DNA of 63,809 nucleotides, counting the filler, from Guillardia theta CCMP2712 (Eukaryota > Protista > Cryptophyta): NCBI RefSeq assembly GCF_000315625.1. It is 5 parts of 5 records of this genome, joined end to end, with 100 filler letters (N's around TTAATTAATTAA, not from the genome) between each part and the next. Parts side by side here need not be neighbours in the genome. Positions count along the whole stretch, not along the records: positions 1 to 26,310 come from NW_005434469.1; 4 more parts are not named here. One strand, 5' to 3'. Under the pieces are notes generated by a model. It saw only the letters and a program-made list of their open reading frames with translations, searched no databases and was not told where the DNA came from. Of this stretch, positions 4,830-25,470 are shown in pieces; position 1 is the stretch's first letter; every line of letters begins with the position of its first letter. Made by a program: the position numbers and the translations under genes.

Positions 4830-5633
4830 TCACGAGAAATCCGGCAGCAGCGCAGTCCAACCATCGAAGGCACTAAGGGCTTCGTTCAAGTATCCCCTCA
4901 CTTCCTCCATATTTCTCTTCTTCGCCGCCTTGTCCAGGTTCTGAAGAGCCTTGTTGAACTTGTTGGCGTTGTCGTCGGCCTTTGACTTGTCAACTTGGAG
5001 CTTCGCCTTCTTGATTTTATCTATCAGCAAGTTCATTCCATCCTTTCGAAGAGCCGTATCGTACAGCCTTGCCATCCTCCTCACGTCGTCCCATGCCGAG
5101 AAGTCGTCGGCCTGACCGTCAAGCTGCTTGAAAGCCTCCTGCATGTCCTTCTCCAACGTCTTCCTCCCCGAGATCAGGACCTCAGTTTGATTCTTCAGCG
5201 CGAGCATCTGCTTCTTCCTCTGCTCCGCTCTTGCCGCCTCCGCCTCCGCCTCCCTCTGACGAGCAAGCTCTCTCTCCTCCTCGAAGATGTCCCTGTACAC
5301 TCTCTTGGGAGGAGGTAGGTTCTTGGGCTGGTTGCATCCTAGCATACTCTGACAAACCCCGTCGTTCCCATCCGCCGCCTCTGCTGCCACCGCATCCTTG
5401 GAGAAGGAGGAGACTAGCTGAGCAGCGCCTAGTGTGGAGAGGAGGGAAAGGACGCTCCTCCTCCCAACCTGCTCGCCCTCTTGCTCGCTTAGACTCATCC
5501 TGGTCCTGCCAGGCAGAGCTGAGCGAGCTCGGTGCGCTCCCTTGCATTCTCGCAAGAGAGTCGCAGGATGTTGGAAAGAGGCCACGTCTCCAGCATAGAG
5601 CACAACAAGAGCGAGTAGGAGAGCGCGTTTCAT
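4830..5633 (-). CDS. PsbQ-like (OEE3 family) thylakoid lumen protein with tripartite targeting presequence
   Basis: Signal peptide MKRALLLALVVLYAGDVAS-F, a transit peptide, a twin-Arg signal GRRSVLSLL..AVAA, and a C-terminal helical domain WDDVRRMAR..LRKD..LQNLDKAAKKRN..YLNEALSAFD resembling PsbQ. Confidence 0.65.
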   Translation of the reverse strand: MKRALLLALVVLYAGDVASFQHPATLLRECKGAHRARSALPGRTRMSLSEQEGEQVGRRSVLSLLSTLGAAQLVSSFSKDAVAAEAADGNDGVCQSMLGCNQPKNLPPPKRVYRDIFEEERELARQREAEAEAARAEQRKKQMLALKNQTEVLISGRKTLEKDMQEAFKQLDGQADDFSAWDDVRRMARLYDTALRKDGMNLLIDKIKKAKLQVDKSKADDNANKFNKALQNLDKAAKKRNMEEVRGYLNEALSAFDGWTALLPDFS

Positions 5634-6783
5634 CGGAAGCGTCTTGAAACTGCGATGATGGTGGAGGTACTTCACGGATGAAGGATCGTGTAGATCTGAA
5701 AAGGAACTCTTGTGAGTACGTCGAATGCCAACCGAGTTCGAAGAGAGAGGAACGCAGCCATTTCACTGATTACGTAGATTGTACTTTGAGCATCCACTAA
5801 TTGCCAGCATGATTTACCACTCTTCTGATCTCGTGATGCTCAAATGCATTATTTCTCCTGCTGCTGCTGCTGCCCCTTGTGCTACTCCTACACCTGTTCC
5901 TGTCCGTGTTCCTGTTCCCCTGTTCCCCTGTTCCTGCTCTTCCCTCTTCTGCTTCCGTTCCTTTTCCTCGCCGAAGACCTACTGCTTTCCTTCGTGTTTT
6001 GAACATGTACCTTTTGCCACTTGATCGACGAGTGCTGTTCTCCTAGTTCCATGTTCATGTTTCCTACCTTGTATCCTTGACCTGCTCTACTCATCCTAGC
6101 TCTCTGCGTCCATTCCTACTTCGATCTCCTCCCACTCCATCCGATTTCCGTTCCTCCTCTTCCTCCAATTATCCGGATCCTTCTGATTCTCTTGATCCTC
6201 CTGATCCTCCTCGTCCTCCTCGTCGTCCTCCTCCTGATCACCTTCCTCTTCCTCCTCTTCCTCCTCTTCCTCCTCTTCCTCCTCTTCCCCCTCTTCCTCC
6301 TCTTCCCCCTCCTACTCATCTCCTCCTCCTCCTCCTCCTCCTCCTCCACCACCACCTCCTCCTCTCCCTTCTGAACACTTCCTCCGCCTGCATCGATCCT
6401 TTAGAACTACCACCCCCACCCACTCTCTCCTCCTTCAAAAGGACCCACCCCTCTGTACCCTCTGTCAGTGACTGAAACGGACAATCAAGTTTGACTGGTG
6501 AGGAGCGAATGAGAGGGAGGAGGAGGAGGAGGAGGGGGGGGAGGGGGACGAGGAAGGAAGAGGGGGAGGAGCAGGAGGAGGAGCAGGAGCAAGAGGAGGA
6601 GCAGGAGGAGCAGGAGGAGGAGCAGGAGGAGCAGGAGCAGGAGGAGATGACGAGAAGAAAGAAGGACGGCAAGAGGAAAGATATCAAGGAGTGGAATGGA
6701 CAAGCGTAAGCGTGCTGATCCAGGGAGGAGAAAAAGAAACTTGACATTGACTGGCCTCTCACTTGACATCTTATCTTCCTGCC

Positions 6784-7893: not shown

Positions 7894-10770
7894 CCTCTTG
7901 TTCCATTCCATGATGGCTATTCTCACAGATGGCAAGCAAGAATGTTTGACAGGATTCTCCCTCATGTATTTTCCTAACGCCGCTGCGTACAGAAATCCAA
8001 GTCTCAAAATCACCACTTGGATGAATCGACAACGGTATGTACCAGAGTTCCTGACGATTTCTATCGTTCAACGGCAATGATGTCATTCTTGACATTCATC
8101 GCAAACAATAGCTTCAACTTCACAAGAGGATTCAAAATCTTTCAGACGAGGTAAGATTAGACTCAGGAGTGAACGTCTGAATCGAGTAAGACGTTTCCTC
8201 GACCAGCTGAAGATCAAGGAGGTTGAAATAAGTGAGATGAAAGATCAACTTCACGTTGCCAAGGTTGTCAAATGAATATTTGAGAGGCTTTTGATGAGCG
8301 AAATTCTTGTGGCGATTCTTGATTTATTTTAATATTTAGCTGTCAAATATCATGTCTTTGTCTTGTCTTGACCTGTCTTGTCTTGTCCTGTCCTGTTTAC
8401 AGTGGCCTTTTCTTTTCTTGACCTACAGGTTTCTTGTCGTGTATTGACTTGTGTTGTCTTGTCGTATTGTGTACCGTAAAGTTGTATTCTCAATTCTACC
8501 TTGCTCTTGCTCTGTCATGCTTTTTCGGATGTTACAATCAATCTTTCGATCTGATCTCAAAAAAATTGTTTCCAGGTGCCGTATCACGAGCAAAGATGGC
8601 TGATAGAACGAAGTGCTTTCGAAGACAAGATTGAAGAATTGGAAAAGACTGTCAGTTGTTTGTTTACAGCCTTGCTGTTTTGCATGTCTGAACTTGCCGG
8701 ATAATAAAAGTGCAGGTTACGGGCATGTTTGCTGAGATCCAAGCAAAGAGCTACAAAGTCGACAAACTGGTAGCGATGATCACTTGGAAATGACTTGAAG
8801 CTCACTTGTGACTATCAATGCAGACAAAAGAGATTGAATCAATGAAGAAAGATGCGACCAGAAGAGAAGAATATTGCCAGGAGTTATCCAAGAAGTTTAT
8901 GTCACAGGTGCACAAATCATCATCGACAAGATTTGTAGCAAACAAATTACACACTAGTCTCATCCTTGATATGATATCATTTCTCCCATGTAGCGTTTCT
9001 CCTCACGTTTCTTGTTTGTTGTTGGTTTGTTTTTTTGATCTTTTGGTTCCGCAGGAAATAACCAAGAACGAGCAGCAAAAATCAACTGCCGATCTTGCAT
9101 TGCGCTATCAAGAGCTGCTCGAGGTATTTGTTGTTGTGTTAGAACGATGCCTCTGTTTCATCACGCAAGTTGAAACAAGTGAAACAGGAGCATTCATGGG
9201 TCAAGAAACTGCATGCGGTTGCCGAGGATCAGGTTTGCTGTTCAAACCATGTTTGTAACAACGACTATGTTTTTTGTGTTGTTGATCAGAAAGTGATGGT
9301 TTATCTTTATTGTTGATGAAGAAAATGATTAATTCATGGGAGACTGTTGAACCTCGACCTGAAAAATTACAATGTGCCCCTGTAGTTTGAAAATTTCTGG
9401 TTGTGTTTGAAGAAGGGATTTGGAGAGTTGTTGTACCATCACATGACACGATGGGTCAATCAGATAGTTCGCCTCCACGAAGAGCTTCATGATGCAAATA
9501 TGACGATGAAGGTGAAACTGTCCATGTTGTTTGATAAAGTGTTTATGATGTTTGCAGGAGCGAGAAGCAAACAAGATAGAGATTATGTCAAAGACAAATA
9601 GAATGGTTGATGATTGACATGAGATGAGAAATGAAACCTTGACACGATTGAAGATTGTCGACGTCGAAGAAGCGAAGATAATGCAAGAACAATTGCTACA
9701 AACGTTTGCGACAGCTGCGCATTCATGAAAAGTGATTGATCTTTGTGCAGAAAGCAGCAATTGAACAATGAGATGGGGTTGAAACAGATGCAAGTTGAGG
9801 AGACAAGAAAAAGTATTTGATGTGTTCAATGACAAATGTTTTGTCACATGTTATGCTGTAGCGTTGATCAGATACAACGAGCTGAACATGGAAATGAAGA
9901 TGACACAGGTAAAACCAATTCATATAGATGATGATGACGATGATGACGACGATGATGATGATTGAAAGAATGATATTGACATGATGGATAGGCTCAAATT
10001 GAACATCTGAAGAATATGTTGATGTAAGTCCTAGACGCAAGTCGATGTGAAAACTGAACGTCTACTCCTCTCCTCTCCTCTCCTCTCCTCTCCTCTCCTC
10101 TCCTCTCCTCTCCTCTCCTCTCCTCTCCTCTCCTCTCCTCTCCTCTCCTCTCCTCTCCTCTCCTCTCCTCTCCTCTCCTCTCCTCTCCTCTCCTCTCCTC
10201 TCCTCTCCTCTCCTCTCCTTTCCCCTTCCCCCTTCTTCTCTCTCCTCTCCTCTTCCCCCAGGGAGGCCGAGCAAGCAAATGTGTCTCTGCACGAGCAGCT
10301 ATCAGCCTCGATTGCTCGTGAGGAAAATCTCAAGAGACATTGTGATAAGGTGGTCAAGAAACCATGGAGTTTGACAACCTCTGAAGACTTTCGTCAGATT
10401 TCATGTGAATATCTGCAGAGAATTGAAATGATGAAGGCAAATTTTCGGAACGCCTCTGAATCTTAATCCTCATGTTGTTGTGTAGAGACCAGAACAGAAA
10501 ACAGTGATTATTACCCAACCCGACGATACAACGATGAAATTTTCAGGTAAAAAGACAACTTGTTGCTGTGTTGTACAAAAAGAAGACAAAGCGTACAAAA
10601 CTAGCTTGCACAGATGATTCTTTTCTTCCTCTGCTAACATGTTCTCTTCTTTGCTTTCTTCTCAGAAATGGAAAAATCCCTCAGAAAACTCAAAGAGCAA
10701 TTGAGGGTGATGCGATGAACTGCACTGTGGAACATATCATTCAAACGGTCTCTTGTTTGACGACACGTTG
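6784..10770 (+). CDS. Multi-exon long coiled-coil protein (boundaries approximate)
   Basis: Many short E/K/Q/L-rich exons flanked by AG/GT, e.g. ERIAALEIRLRLTQD, KLLRRQNHELKTALKQ, TKEIESMKKDATRREEYCQELSKKF, EAEQANVSLHEQLSASIAREENLKRHCDK. Confidence 0.55.
10064..10220. repeat. (CTCCT)n intronic microsatellite, representative of many (CCT, CAT, AAC, CTCCTG, AGAGC tracts)
   Basis: Directly visible; similar tracts occupy most long introns, e.g. 20220-20410 and 21525-21650. Confidence 0.95.
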
Positions 10771-11391: not shown

Positions 11392-13939
11392 TCAGCTCAT
11401 CTACAGTCAGTGTTTGATAACCATCCTCCTCCTCTGCGGCCCTCGCCCGTCCTCCCCCAACCCTCCTCCTCCTGCTCCTCCTCCTGCTCCTCCTGCTCCT
11501 CCTGCTCCTCCTCCTCCTCCTCCTCCTCCTCCTCTCCTCTCCTCCTCCTCCTCCTTCTCCTTCTTCTTCTCCTCCTCCTCTTTCCTCCCTCTCCTCTCCT
11601 TCTCTTCTCCTCCCTCCTCCGCCACCACCTTCTCTGCTCGCTCTCTGCTCGCTCCCTCCTCCTTCTCCTTCTCCTCCTCCTTCTCCTCCTCCTCTCCTCC
11701 TCCTCCTCCTTCTCCTCCTCCTCCTCCTCCTCCTCCTCCTCCTCCTTCAATTTCTCAGCGTTTCCTCCTCCTCCAGNNNNNNNNNNNNNNNNNNNNNNNN
11801 NNNNNNNNNNNNNNNNNNNNNNNNNNNNNNNNNNNNNNNNNNNNNNNNNNNNNNNNNNNNNNNNNNNNNNNNNNNNGGGAGAGGGGCAGGGAGGGAGAGG
11901 GAGAGGGGCAGGGAGAGGGGCAGGGAGAGGGAGAGGGGCAGGGAGAGGGAGAGGGAGAGGGAGAGGGAGGAAAGAGGTGTGGGAGGAGCAGGACGATGAA
12001 CAGGACGATGAAGAGGACGAGAAGGACTAAGGCATCAAGAAGGAGAAGGAGGACGAGGAAGAGATGGTGAACCTCTCGGTCCATGTTTGATCTTGCCGTG
12101 TCTTCAAGGTGCCTTCTGAACACCTGAGAAGGTTCAGCAGCTTTTCACTTGGACAAGTTCACGTTACATCTGCAGAGAAGATAGTCGTCTTGGACAGCAT
12201 CTTGCTCAAGAACTCTTTTCTCCTGCAAGCTCAATCACGACCAAGTGTGTTGTGCTCGTTCAAACTGTTGTCAAACCTTGCAAGAAATGTCGGGAAGGGA
12301 AGGGGAGAGAACTCCATTTGCACGTTCTCCGCGTACTTGGAATATTTGCTTGGTTGAGATCCAAGAATTGACAAGTCGAGGTCGTTCAGGATGGCAAAAT
12401 CTCCTGTAGATGATGGAGTGAGAATATATACAGCGAGAACAATGCAGAAGAGACATTGCAAAATGATGGCTGGAGGTTACAGAGAGTGAGGAGTGAGTAT
12501 GAGTATGAAGTTATATGTATGTTTTCAGAATAAACAGATGAGAGGATGTTGTTGGCTTTTTCAACAGGGTGAAAATGAGATGGGGGAGAGTTTAGAAACA
12601 TGCAAGATTGTACAAGATGTGAGAAGGGAGAAACAAGATGTGTCTTGAAGTCAAAGCAAATCATTCCCTGACCTTTGAGTTCCCTGTCGTGATCAGCGTC
12701 GTGCTTCGTTGACATGATCATCTTACAAACAAGATCCTGCAGTCAAGACATGCCTTCAGAATCGTTCTTGATCTCTCATCAACACAACATGTACAGGATC
12801 ATTCTTCATTTCTCATGACAACAACATGAACATGTTGATTTCTAATCATCTTCACCTGATCTTCCCGCGAAATCTGTCGAGCTGCATTACAGAACGTCTG
12901 AAAGAATTTCACGCTTGCCTCCTCGTTGTCCTGGACAAGTTTCAGAAATCCTCACCATCCACCATTACAACGCACTGTTCTTGTAGCATCGTAGACAACA
13001 TCGTGAAAGAAGATCGCGAGGTACAACAGATCCTGCCTGTCGGCAGAGATTGCGAACTCTTGGAGCAGAACAAACATGTCCCGGAGATGATGCGTGTTAT
13101 GATAATACCTCCCAACACCAGAGTACTTCTGTCTTATCAACCTCCACCAACTTCTCTGTGTAGCGTCGTCGACCTTCAACGATCGGCAGCAGGAGAACCA
13201 TCTGCTACTGAGGAAGTTGTTTCCGTTGGAGTCTTGTTGCACTTGTATTGGGGGTTTGGATGACATCCTGTTCTTGACACCTTGCAGAGCTTTCTTGACC
13301 TGAGTAAGAAGTGAGTAGTAGGTGAGACAAAGGTAACATGATTGAAGTTTGCTGTGAAGCAAAATGGAGTGATTGTTGTTTGAGAAATCAGCAGAATGCG
13401 AATTGATATGACACTGGAAACAAACAACGATAGCAAAAAGAAACAAGATTGAGCGCGAAAGATAGAAATGTCGGCGACAAAGTTGTTTCACCTGTTGATT
13501 AGTTTGTTCCGTATCCCATTCGTTGGAGATGATGATATCACTTCGTTTCATTCTGTCCTGGTTGGTCATCTGCGCAGAAATTCTCTTCTTTGCATCCTAC
13601 AAGGAAGACCGATCATGACAAGGAAAGGTTGCTGTTCTCCACAAACTTGACCTCCTCGCTGATGTTGTTCCTCTTCATCAGCCTTTCCTTGGACTTCTCT
13701 TCAGGGACGATGACTGTCCATACCTGGGACAGACAAGTCAGTATGATCGAGCAAGCATATGATGAAGCTGTGCTGATGATGGAAGTCTTCTTGCGAAGCG
13801 AGGAAGGATCGAAAGGATAAGGAAAGCAAGTATGAAGAATGTAAATGGCAGATGGTACAACATGAGGGGGAAGGAGGAGAATGTTGGTTGAGGAGGAGGA
13901 GGAGGAGGAGGAATCGAGGGATGAGCAGAAGCGGGAGCA

Positions 13940-13972
<33 letters not shown>

Positions 13973-15474
13973 AAGTGAAAAAGGACAACTAGGATGTAGG
14001 GGGCAGGTGGAAAGAAGGAGAAGCATACGCATACGCATACGCATACGCTTACGCATACGCAGGAGCAGCAGCAGCAGGATCATATATCCACCTCATCAAC
14101 GAAGTCATCCCAGCACGCCTCCAGCAGTACCGCCGCCTCCATCACGCACAGCTCGACGCCTCTCTCCCTCATCCCCTTCATCTCCTCTACCGCAAGCTCC
14201 CTGATCGCTGGCCACACGATCCCGTTCAGGACTTTCATCTGCTCTGCGTCACCAAAGACGATGCTGGCCAGGGACCGTCGGTCAATCTCCCCAGAGGAAG
14301 GGTCGACCACCTGGCTACCGAACGCCTCCACAACCCTCTTGAACGTTTCGCTCCCCTTCAGGTACGCCCGGTGCCCGAGCTTGTCACAGTCAACAATCTC
14401 GCATCCTTCCTCCTTCAGCATCCCGGAGATCGTAGACTTCCCACTTGCTATCCCCCCCGTCAGCCCGACGATGTACGGGAGGACGTCAGGGGACGTACAC
14501 CGTACAAACTCCTCCTCTCCCACCTCTCCTCCTTGCCTGCACAGCGAGTTCACGTCCGCACCGTTGAACGAACCGAGCATCGTCCTCCTCAGCATAGTCG
14601 AGCTCATCTTGTTGGAATCATCTGCATCCTCGGGCCCCACAAGGTCCACCACGTCCACCACGAGCTCGTTCAGATTCCTGTCCACCCTCCGCTTGTTCAC
14701 GCTGTGCCCTCCCCGCTCCGTCTCCCTCGACACAACGATGCACTGCAGCTGCTCGTCAACGATGGAGGGGCCGAAGGGGTCGGAGATGGGGACTATCTCA
14801 TACCGCACGCTGTCTCGCAGCGACTGCAGCAGCTGCAGCAGCCGAACCTGCCGCTGCTCGAACGGCTGCATCACGTCCCTCATCGTCTTCCCCTCCAGCA
14901 AGGGGCCGGTTGAAACTCCGATTAGCACTCGCTCGCTCGCGCAGACGCAGGTCATAGAGAGGAGGAGCTTGTGCCCAGCATGGATGCGATCGAACGTTCC
15001 CCCTAGCACGACGTGCTGGAAGTTACCAGGGGGCAGCAGCATGCAAGTGCCTTCGTCCCATCCGAGGCTTGTCAGGCTGGAGCAGCATGGGAGGTCGAGC
15101 AACAGCTTCTGCATAGCAGGGAGCCTTCGCTCCGTCCTTCGTTCCATCCACCTGTCCACACAATCCTCCTCCTCCTTGCAGCAGATGATCGCCTCCGCGT
15201 CCTCCGCGCTCCTAGCGAGCCACGCCTCCTCGCTCGGGAGGAGGACGCGAGCGTCGAGACGGGGAGCAGAGAGGCTTAGAAGGTCGTAGATGAACTTGAG
15301 CCTCCCTTGGATGGCGGAGCGAGACTGCTGTGACCAGTCTCCCTCCAGCAGGATGTAGAGCCTGTCATGCGCGACGTCCGCCGCTCGCCGCATCCTCGCA
15401 CTGTCCTGCTCATTGGCTTCGAGCTGCATCCTGATCAGTCCGACGCGGACGGAGGAGCTTGCTGGAAGCGGCAT
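11392..15474 (-). CDS. COASY: Bifunctional CoA synthase (PPAT + dephospho-CoA kinase) fused to a C-terminal HD-superfamily phosphohydrolase
   Basis: PPAT motifs VLGGTFDRIHAGHK, ISDPFGPS, VVSRET and KMSST; DPCK P-loop GLTGGIASGKS. Phase-0 exons 13723-13652, 13596-13492 and 13299 onward continue without a stop into RYYHNTHH..FFHDVVYD..DNEEAS..DLDLSILG. First and last exons are uncertain. Confidence 0.88.
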
Positions 15475-16123: not shown

Positions 16124-19100
16124 ATGCTGGGGCATATCCTCAAGGAGCGGCGGCTGGCGATCAGAGGCAAGAGTATGGCGGGAGCGTCGGGCATGCTGAG
16201 GACACCTGTCATACCACACTAGCGCGTCCATGCATGCCCTGTCGCCTCCTGCTATTTAGCAGACGATCGACCCGTTCATTGCCTCCCCCTCGTCCTCTCC
16301 GCTGCAATGTTCGTTTCATGTCCTTGCCAGTGGTCTTATCAGCATCGCATTCACTGACGCTACTCATGTCGCTTGACTCTCGTATCTTCCTTCTCTCACT
16401 CCCTTGCAAGATTCACCAGAGTCACCCTCCCCCGTCCTCCTGACATGCCTTACTCCCTTGTGGACTTGTCGACATTTCTGACTCCCTTGCGCAGGCGGTA
16501 TTCAGATTGCCGTTCGGGTATGGGGGGAAGACCCGAGGACGATAACAAACCCAGCAGAAAGATGGATTGCAGTCCATGGTTGCCTCTTCTTCTTCTTCTT
16601 CTTCTTTGTCCTCGTCCCCGCCCCCCCTCTCCACTTCTCGCCCTCCTCCTCCTCCTCTTCCTCCTCCTCCTCCTCCTCGTCGTCCTCCTCCTCGTCCTCC
16701 TCCTCCTCCTCCTCCTCCTCCTCCTCCTCCTCTTCCTCCTCCTCCTCCAAAGTTGAAGTCTCGGAGCAGGATGGCTGGACAACGCTGGGTCCTTCGATTT
16801 CTTGGCGCCGCTGCTGCTGAAGCGAGGAGCGAAGTCGATCGCATGCATCGACCTGGCAGGTGTGAGGGAACGAGGATGGTAGCAATGGAGCTGTTGATCG
16901 GTAAAACAGGCCATGGGCAGTCGGACTGGAGGTCGACGGGTACATACCATGTGGTCGACAATGTCGCGGACGTGATCTATACCGCCGACGCTCTTGAGTG
17001 GAAACAGTTTTCCCTGTGGGTTGTTTGTATTTGTTGCCTCAGAGAGTTGTCAGGTTGGTGATTGTTGTGCTTCCTGTGGTTGCAGGATCGGCCATTCCCT
17101 GGGCGGATGTATCTCCCAGACTGTGAGGACGATGTTGTGAAGGTGGCAGATAACACTGCAAGAGCAGATAGCAGCAGCTATGCCTGACCGCGTTCTCCGA
17201 CTAGTATCCATAGAAGCGATGGGATTCTGGGCTCAGGTGAGGCCGCGACAATGCAGCATGACGGGTGGGTGAAGAGGGAATCAGGACTCGCATACCTTCG
17301 TGAAGAACATCCGAAGAAGCCTGCTGGATAAGCCGAGGGGAGGGAACATGCAGTGAGTTCCTTCTGTTGTCTATCTACCCCGTCTCAAACTCGAGCGATC
17401 AGTCTAAAGCCTTTATCCACCCACCGTTCGATCACTCGCTCGCTCGCTCGCTCCTCTCATTCTTTCCTGCGGTCATTCATACCATCATCCTTTCCTCACA
17501 TCGATCATCTCCCATGTTACATCCTCTTGGCTCCTCCTGCTCTTCTAACTTCTCACTCTCCTCCTCCTCCTCCTCCTCCTCCTCCTCCTCCTCCTCCTCC
17601 TCCTCTTCCTCCTCTTCCTCCTCCTCCTCCTCCTCCTCTTCCTCCTCTTCCTCCTCCTCCTCCTATAGGATCTACCCTTCCCTCGAAGAATGTGCCGTGC
17701 GAAGAAGTGCGACTACCTCCTTGGGGTCATTGTCTAAGGTCAGCGCTGTACCCTCCAAACAACATTCTTTCCTTCCTCAACTCTTCTAACTCTCACCGCT
17801 ACCCCTACCCCTCCTCTCCTCTCCTCTCCTCGCCTCGCCTCGCCTCTCCTCTCCTCTCCTCTCCTCTCCTCTCCTCTCCTCTCCTCCTCTCCTCTCCTCT
17901 TCTCTCCTCTCCTCTCCTCACCTCTCCTCTCCTATCCTCTCCTTCCATTTGTGTCCTTCCCTCTATCCCCTTGTCTTCTCTTCTCACTTGTTTTGCAGGA
18001 AGCTGCCATGACGATGGTAGAGAGAGGAACGAGAAAAAGCGACTGCGATATGGGTTACATCTGGTCTTCCGATCCGAACCTGCTGGCCCCATCAAGACAC
18101 AGGCAACATGAAACACTGTTTGCTTGATGTGATTACTTTGAAGTCCATCATAGATGTTGAGATGTCTCTTTTCATATCTCTGAGTTTTGATGAGATTTAT
18201 CTTCTGAATGTTTTCAATCCTTGGCTTCCTTTTGCTGTCTGTTGTTGCGCGTGATACTTTGCGTGATACTGTGTATTAGTCCGTCAGTTCGATGCTGTTA
18301 GTATCTTTACATCTCCCCATTGGCTCTTTGCTACTGTGTTCGATCCTGCATTTCACTTGTCTCATTCGGAATGGAGAGCAGGGTGGATGAGATTGTGGCA
18401 AGATCAATCCTCAGCCATATCGAATGTCCTCAACTGATCATAGTCTGTCGGTAAGGGTGGCTGAGTATGATAGTACTCGATGTACTGACATGTCTATGAT
18501 TACAGGGATGGGATTTGGAAAGATGCTGCCCCGTTTGGATTGACGCTCTTCTCTGTAAACTCTTGTCTTGCTTACCAAGTGTTGTGGTTGTCAAACGATT
18601 TGGAAGAAATTGAAGTCCTGGCTCGATTTGTTTGCTTCTCTTGTCAAAATTGTTGATTTTGTCTCCACCGCCTGCCCAAAAGACAGTTGGAGAAAATCGG
18701 AGCAGTGTGTTGGCATTTGTGCTGTCCTTTGCTGGCATGCATGTGAAATTCTTGTGCGTTGTATTTTAGAAGTGCTGCACTTGATATGAAAGAATCTGAA
18801 ATCTGAAATTCTTGCCATTGAGTTGGATGTATCAGATTCCTTGGGGAGTTACAATTTTCTTCGGTAAGATGTCAACACAAACCAAGATTTGCAACTGATT
18901 GTTCCGGCCAGCCAACTTTGCCGCAAGGGTTGTACACGTGATGACAAAGGGATTTACCCCAATCAGGCAAGGGAAACAAGTCAAAAATGTTTGGTGTTGA
19001 CATTTTTGAAGTGCGGAGATCTCGAAAGAAGCTGGAGTGATAGGAAAGATCCGATTCGTCTACATGATGCTGTTTCGAAGGTGGCTCGTGTGCAGGTGAA

Positions 19101-19577: not shown

Positions 19578-25470
<5,893 letters not shown>

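Follow-up and report, generated by a model that had tools for sequence, protein, structure and literature searches.

Coenzyme A (CoA) synthesis is regarded as a closed pathway of five steps. To our knowledge the DUF89 domain of PANK4 is its sole known accessory hydrolase. Here we consider a gene of the cryptophyte Guillardia theta CCMP2712 that is predicted to encode a three-domain CoA synthase: a phosphopantetheine adenylyltransferase (PPAT) of the archaeal/eukaryotic type, a dephospho-CoA kinase (DPCK) and a C-terminal metal hydrolase of the HD superfamily. The gene lies in the first part of a window of 63,809 nucleotides, filler included, from assembly GCF_000315625.1. The part of the window analysed is contig C205:52930-79239, and the genome searched has 87,145,349 bases on 669 contigs.

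The described systems closest to this gene each share something with it. Animal COASY has the same order of PPAT then DPCK, the same motifs, and 34-45% identity over exon 1 of the window gene. The animal proteins listed are ~390-570 amino acids (aa) long and end after DPCK, whereas the window protein adds an HD domain of ~210 residues. CoaD, PPAT and NadD belong to one adenylyltransferase superfamily. The HD domain of YqeK hydrolyses the wrong-base analogues of nicotinic acid adenine dinucleotide (NaAD) that NadD makes. In mycoplasmas YqeK and NadD form one fused protein, and in Gram-positive bacteria their genes are clustered (PMC9426524). The likeness is that, in minimal genomes above all, a cofactor-pathway adenylyltransferase of the same superfamily has an HD hydrolase as fusion partner or in its gene cluster. 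However, YqeK is of another HD family (8wmy, Z 6.6 over 112 residues) and serves the NAD pathway. The DUF89 phosphatase of PANK4 acts on 4'-phosphopantetheine and can restrain CoA synthesis (PMC9352595). There too a CoA-pathway enzyme is joined to a metal-dependent phosphatase whose substrate is an intermediate of the pathway and whose effect is to restrain or clean up CoA synthesis, but the DUF89 fold is unrelated to HD and the steps concerned are the first of the pathway, not the last.

Gene model and fusion junction

The exon structure is a prediction from the genomic sequence. Each exon was searched singly. The gene has nine predicted exons on the minus strand, from 15474 to at least 12073, and all introns are GT-AG (Table 1). 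Its 5' end was set at the first in-frame ATG, and a further exon may lie upstream of it. The peptide strings quoted in a preliminary description of this DNA were all found on the minus strand. Its phase-0 splicing is right for the junctions from exon 1 to exon 6 and for exons 8/9, but exons 6/7 join in phase 1 and exons 7/8 in phase 2.

Exon 1 matches the NCBIfam PPAT model NF001985 with 111.1 bits (cut-off 104) and the nucleotidyltransferase family CTP_transf_like (PF01467) with 28.6 bits (cut-off 21). The H-x-G-H motif is present. Exon 1 alone also matches the DPCK model TIGR00152 with 95.3 bits (cut-off 65.55). The 180 positions of Pfam CoaE run in order across exon 1 (1-122), exon 2 (126-149) and exon 3 (150-177). 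A PPAT followed by a complete DPCK with a P-loop is the arrangement of a bifunctional CoA synthase, and the front part of the predicted protein is of this kind. Exon 1 is 54-56% identical to P0001-P0003 over its entire length, and its best named match is from the cryptophyte Baffinella. In these domain libraries PPAT and DPCK both score above their cut-offs. The HD domain does not reach the gathering score of Pfam HD (PF01966), since exon 4 scores 13.1 bits and the homologous P0003:535-752 scores 16.9 bits against a cut-off of 22.

The fusion point is in exon 4. One open frame runs through the C-terminal helix of DPCK, a linker of ~30 residues and the first 80 positions of the HD domain. The HD part of this exon covers profile positions 3-82, within which the R-x-Y-H-x3-H and F-H-D motifs lie. 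With hmmsearch, the HD profile A2 falls on exons 4-9 in order and with no overlap, and it is matched at nearly full length (positions 3-208 of 210). The last four of these positions, 205-208, come from the codons just past the minimum extent of exon 9. When five fused proteins are placed on the window with tblastn they are collinear with the exons and cross the junction of exons 3 and 4, and exon 4 itself aligns with the fused homologues over this junction. Since intron 3 is in frame and stop-free, DPCK and HD share a frame even if intron 3 is retained. The preliminary description had joined DPCK to HD within one exon without a stop, and it was correct: the frame of exon 4 is open and the profiles tile the exons in order.

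One can imagine that the model wrongly joins two neighbours, a COASY gene and a separate HD gene, with the HD protein starting at the Met of exon 4 after the DPCK helix. There is an in-frame ATG 11 codons into exon 4, and the homologue P0001 lacks the HD part. However, this scenario has to explain why the DPCK helix and the start of the HD domain sit in the same exon with no stop, and why the intron before it is also stop-free and in frame. It also has to explain why homologues are contiguous across the same point, including one complete transcript open reading frame (ORF) from MMETSP. A genome search found no second copy of the HD family elsewhere. We regard the two-gene scenario as very improbable, and we are confident that this is a genuine fusion encoded by one gene.

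An end of the gene at 11392, as in the preliminary description, is not supported. The sequence from 12072 downwards is microsatellite, and coding support ends at 12073. The frame of exon 9 is open into an assembly gap, and the stop codon is not within the visible sequence. Between the last conserved HD codon and the gap are 196 bases, and the fusion is unaffected; the gap hides only the stop codon and the 3' end.

Table 1. Coordinates of the predicted gene and of other features of the window
Feature	Position	Strand	Content	Evidence
Exon 1	14093..15474	-	N-terminal region, PPAT (GGTFDRIHAGH motif), first two thirds of DPCK (P-loop GGIASGKST)	NCBIfam, Pfam, homologues
Exon 2	13652..13723	-	DPCK, 24 codons	Pfam CoaE; collinear tblastn; AG/GT borders
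Exon 3	13492..13596	-	DPCK, 35 codons	Pfam CoaE, E 1.9e-4; collinear tblastn
Intron 3	13300..13491	-	192 bases, stop-free, in frame	ORF 12952-13569 continuous; skipped by P0003, P0002
Exon 4	12976..13299	-	Fusion point: DPCK C-terminal helix, linker, HD start	A2 profile, E 2.9e-25
Exon 5	12856..12930	-	HD positions 84-104, DNEE-S motif	A2 profile; collinear tblastn
Exon 6	12673..12736	-	HD positions 110-124, I-x2-T-K-H; end phase 1	E 0.012, weak alone, in order
Exon 7	12277..12403	-	HD positions 128-166, D-L-D-L-S-I-L-G motif; end phase 2	hmmsearch, E 4.3e-11; tblastn
Exon 8	12168..12222	-	HD positions 170-186	E 0.017, weak alone, in order
Exon 9 (minimum extent)	12073..12123	-	HD positions 189-204	A2 profile; ORF 11755-12123 crosses N gap
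Assembly gap (N run)	11777..11876		Between (GAGGGA)n at 11877-11969 and (CCT)95 at 11462-11746	
654-aa ORF	23506..25470	-	Aspartate kinase-like	Translation, by eye
281-aa ORF	4830..5675	-	Signal-peptide-like start	By eye
CTCCT pentanucleotide array	10065-10253; 17811-17943; 21004-21196			

The HD domain and its fusions in protists and bacteria

The HD domain belongs to a very large family. HMMER against 1.84 billion representatives gave 19,909 matches at E <=1e-3 and 7,704 at E <=1e-30, each match being a cluster at 50% identity. Most are stand-alone bacterial proteins of ~210 aa, and in the ESM Atlas the members are bacterial clusters without a common Pfam family. The domain has no above-threshold match in Pfam or NCBIfam, and a sequence search of the PDB gave chance matches only. 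Six members (P0127, P0135, P0141, P0143, P0149 and P0153) carry the JGI name "predicted metal-dependent HD superfamily phosphohydrolase". The preliminary description had placed the added domain in an HD family of the COG4339 type, and this name would agree with that. These stand-alone bacterial proteins have the same domain end to end, with 31-40% identity and the same invariants. They differ from the window protein in being ~210 aa long and unfused.

Alignment A2 has 21 invariant columns, of which 18 are conserved in the window copy when read by eye. Both His of Y-H-x3-H, the H-D, the N-E, the His of T-x-H and the D-x-D are kept, and the T-x-H variant of exon 6 is also found in the bacterial members P0130, P0139 and P0141. 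As translated from the predicted exons, the domain thus retains nearly all family invariants, and no His, Asp, Asn or Glu of the signature is lost.

An AlphaFold model was made for the homologous domain P0003:540-752, not for the window protein. It has ten helices and a pLDDT of 97.8. In VIA-align its best matches are catalytic domains of class I cyclic-nucleotide phosphodiesterases (PDEs), with Z 14.2-15.3 over ~205 residues. HD hydrolases rank next: 2pq7 with Z 14.1, YpgQ with 10.9 and YedJ with 10.8. Since Z values of 13-14 are common between helical models and chains unrelated to them, we read the fold as "HD/PDE-type" and no further. Foldseek of the model gave nothing at E 1e-3 or better, the best match having E ~4e-3. 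The model is consistent with an all-helical HD fold carrying the H...HD...D residues, at Z 10.8-14.1 to 2pq7, 5dqv and 3gw7.

It is worth asking whether the domain could itself be a class I PDE. The PDE signature is H-D-x2-H-x-[AG]-x2-[NQ] (PROSITE), in a catalytic domain of ~300 residues. Class I PDEs are the best structural match, and a Y-H-x3-H element followed by H-D is common to both. However, identity is 9-17% and the window domain is ~100 residues shorter. The window has H-D-V-V-Y-D (H-D-x2-Y) in a domain of ~210 residues, which does not fit a class I PDE.

A word search with exon 1 returns animal COASY and longer unnamed proteins from metagenomes and transcriptomes. In at least 11 proteins of 621-825 aa a single ORF matches both of our own profiles, CoaE and, at full length, HD. 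The PPAT-DPCK-HD proteins are P0003, P0011, P0016, P0017, P0019, P0020, P0039, P0040, P0154, P0161 and P0239. The complete MMETSP transcript ORF is P0152 (759 aa), in which CoaE spans 326-525 and HD spans 547-752; it shares a 90% cluster with P0003. In P0002 the HD copy is truncated. A region-restricted word search for long HD-carrying proteins found only two and gave no taxon names for the fused form. In a quick tree the eukaryotic fused HD domains form one group (SH-aLRT 89), and the main bacterial fusion clade stands apart (99). We take the three-domain gene of the preliminary description to be real; other protists have it as a single ORF, and the architecture is conserved in a clade of protist proteins.

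The preliminary description also held that animal COASY ends right after the DPCK helix. This is true of typical animal proteins, but not of ctenophore COASY. P0038 (Mnemiopsis leidyi), P0047, P0058, P0100 and P0061 have a 230-residue C-terminal tail at residues ~500-730. The tail is collinear with the HD profile over 185 columns and all signature residues are lost (hhalign E 6.5e-4, probability 27%). Possibly it is a degenerate HD copy, in which case the fusion would predate animals. The tail of Salpingoeca punica COASY has no similarity to the HD profile.

The HD family is also fused to a CoA enzyme in bacteria. Eighty bacterial loci were fetched with a single protein, P0156, and are therefore biased to Planctomycetota and Actinomycetota. 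At the Paceibacterota loci L027, L028 and L052 a 369-aa protein has CoaD in its first 165 residues, matching TIGR01510 at full length with 135-142 bits (cut-off 103.3), and HD in the rest. With our own CoaD profile the fusion is also found in L016, L080, L091, L106, L107 and L108. A coaE gene is directly upstream of the fusion in L027, L028, L052, L106 and L108. In the first three of these it matches TIGR00152 and is on the same strand as the fusion. The coaE stop overlaps the start of the fusion in L027, L052, L106 and L108, and in L028 two bases separate them.

Among 301 genomes of the same phylum as these Paceibacterota loci, full fusions are present in G001 and G084 (the latter 41% identical to the L052 fusion). 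The other arrangements seen among these genomes are CoaD-CoaE fusions or adjacent coaD and coaE genes. Among 201 genomes of the same order they are present in G001, G451 (71% identity to the L052 fusion), G308 (57%) and G410 (50%), and in G451 and G410 the fusion gene directly follows coaE. In another arrangement, listed for locus L100 and for genome G498 of this order, coaD and HD are separate genes that overlap. The fusion proteins are 41-89% identical to that of L052 and their host genomes are 0.6-1.5 Mb. This spread of identity implies that the CoaD-HD arrangement is old.

The eukaryotic PPAT matches NF001985 while the bacterial CoaD matches TIGR01510, and the order of the domains differs too. 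Given the different PPAT models, the different domain order and the separate groups in the tree, we conclude that the HD family was joined to the last CoA steps at least twice, independently. The CoaD-HD proteins of Patescibacteria are new here and form the second independent link to these steps. The preliminary description had proposed a Rosetta-stone link to CoA metabolism. This second case, often just downstream of coaE, strengthens the link, and the biochemical role is still something we infer.

Some minor observations belong with these fusions. The fusion at L016 is 75% identical to the Paceibacterota one and lies in a 4.2 Mb bin of Planctomycetota, G003, which also has its own separate HD and CoaD genes elsewhere. 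It is either a mis-binned contig or a gene transfer. At L097 and L099 (Patescibacteria G088 and G089), frames of ~380 aa match the CoaD and CoaE profiles; such a CoaD-CoaE fusion would be a bacterial analogue of COASY in eukaryotes. G. theta has a second, separate DPCK gene at G000:C3:225738-226515 (PF01121, 70.8 bits), so the fused gene is not the sole DPCK of this genome.

What the HD domain may do

We argue that the HD domain would hydrolyse a nucleotide that is made, or mis-made, by PPAT or DPCK. Three candidate activities can be ranked. The first is a proofreading diphosphatase against the dephospho-CoA analogues that arise when PPAT uses the wrong NTP. We rank it first because of the YqeK-NadD precedent within the same adenylyltransferase superfamily, and because CoaD-HD too is found in minimal genomes. 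The second candidate would remove the ribose 3'(2')-phosphate from CoA, iso-CoA or 3',5'-ADP and so place an opposing or repairing phosphatase next to a kinase. It would fit because HD directly follows DPCK in the eukaryotic protein and the fold is phosphodiesterase-like. The HD enzyme MESH1 takes the 2'-phosphate off NADPH. In E. coli, 2'-nucleotidase and 2',3'-cyclic phosphodiesterase activities reside in the HD domain of the CCA-adding enzyme. The third candidate is a hydrolytic reversal of the PPAT step, which would act as a valve on the CoA level. Overall, a three-domain CoA synthase whose HD domain hydrolyses such a nucleotide is the explanation we moderately favour, and that the domain acts on some compound of the CoA pathway seems rather likely from the fusions. 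Any one of the three activities taken singly is at best a tentative suggestion. We are equally tentative about extending the idea to the family as a CoA quality-control or turnover enzyme, be it a proofreading diphosphatase or a 3'(2')-phosphatase on CoA, iso-CoA or 3',5'-ADP.

Several points weigh against a CoA role and must be noted. A literature search found no report of this HD family, its activity or a fusion of it to a CoA enzyme. The other ~75 of the 80 loci, from Planctomycetota, Actinomycetota, Deinococcota, Verrucomicrobiota, Gemmatimonadota and Myxococcota, have neither coaD nor coaE within 8 kb. Three further metagenomic contexts of HD genes also lack CoA genes. Even within Patescibacteria, stand-alone HD genes occur in five genomes, and neither coaD nor coaE lies within 4 kb of them. 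Since most stand-alone copies have no CoA context, the link may hold for a subset of the family only. The protein P0001 (577 aa) is 81% identical to P0002 over 565 residues and ends soon after DPCK without HD; an isoform, a truncated contig or loss of the domain in its lineage could each account for this. The HD tree comes from a quick search and its backbone is weak. Finally, the window copy has Q for R and F for Y in I-R-R-E-Y, and V for A in D-N-E-E-x-S-A.

These points can be turned into two other explanations. The HD domain could be a general nucleotide housekeeping enzyme, for Ap4A, NTPs or oxidised nucleotides, that was fused for co-expression or by chance and has no CoA substrate. The stand-alone members without CoA neighbours, which are the majority, fit this, as do other fusion partners such as the DUF3267 of P0157. 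Among the related HD folds are those of YpgQ, an NTP pyrophosphohydrolase, and YqeK, an Ap4A hydrolase. However, this explanation does not sit well with two independent fusions to the same pair of steps, made with PPATs of non-orthologous types. Nor does it sit well with a fusion retained in genomes of 0.6-1.5 Mb while its sequence diverged to 41-89% identity, or with a eukaryotic fusion retained across a diverse clade. We consider housekeeping rather unlikely. Alternatively the domain could be a non-catalytic module for regulation or scaffolding, for example a sensor of CoA or a nucleotide that controls PPAT and DPCK. The ctenophore tail has lost all its signature residues, so a non-catalytic version seems tolerable, and the two substitutions in I-R-R-E-Y are at invariant positions. 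But the His/Asp signature is kept in the window copy and in all fused protist and bacterial copies, and this makes a non-catalytic module more improbable still.

If the domain does hydrolyse a product of PPAT or DPCK, it would be a second accessory hydrolase, tied to the last two CoA steps by two independent fusions, in protists and in minimal-genome Patescibacteria. These fusions give a very large uncharacterised HD family its first testable function, with concrete and cheap assays. The finding would also extend the idea from NadD-YqeK that cofactor adenylyltransferases travel with HD-type proofreaders (PMC9426524). A CoA quality-control role, if true, would be a new step in a textbook pathway in bacteria and many protists.

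Other associations of the family and other features of the window

Among the 80 bacterial loci the recurrent neighbours of HD genes are lineage-restricted: DUF4031, UvrD, P450, ClpB, RecJ and ValRS. A small DUF4031 gene (PF13223, E 3e-34) is a median of 70 bases from the HD gene in 19 actinomycete loci, for example L029, L033, L036, L038 and L040, and L076:8577-8840. This adjacency may simply be gene order shared by related genomes. The N-terminal extensions of P0192, P0231, P0301 and P0278 gave no match. P0157 (408 aa) joins the HD domain to DUF3267, which is a putative zincin peptidase and a partner unrelated to CoA.

Two other open frames of the window were read by eye. The aspartate kinase-like ORF in Table 1 has a long N-terminal extension and is possibly the front of a bifunctional aspartokinase/homoserine dehydrogenase. 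The shorter one has a hydrophobic start like that of a signal peptide, followed by A-S-F, and in translation this resembles the bipartite plastid-targeting leaders of cryptophytes. Simple repeats are abundant, with 39 tandem-repeat rows in 26 kb, and the CTCCT array occurs at three sites.

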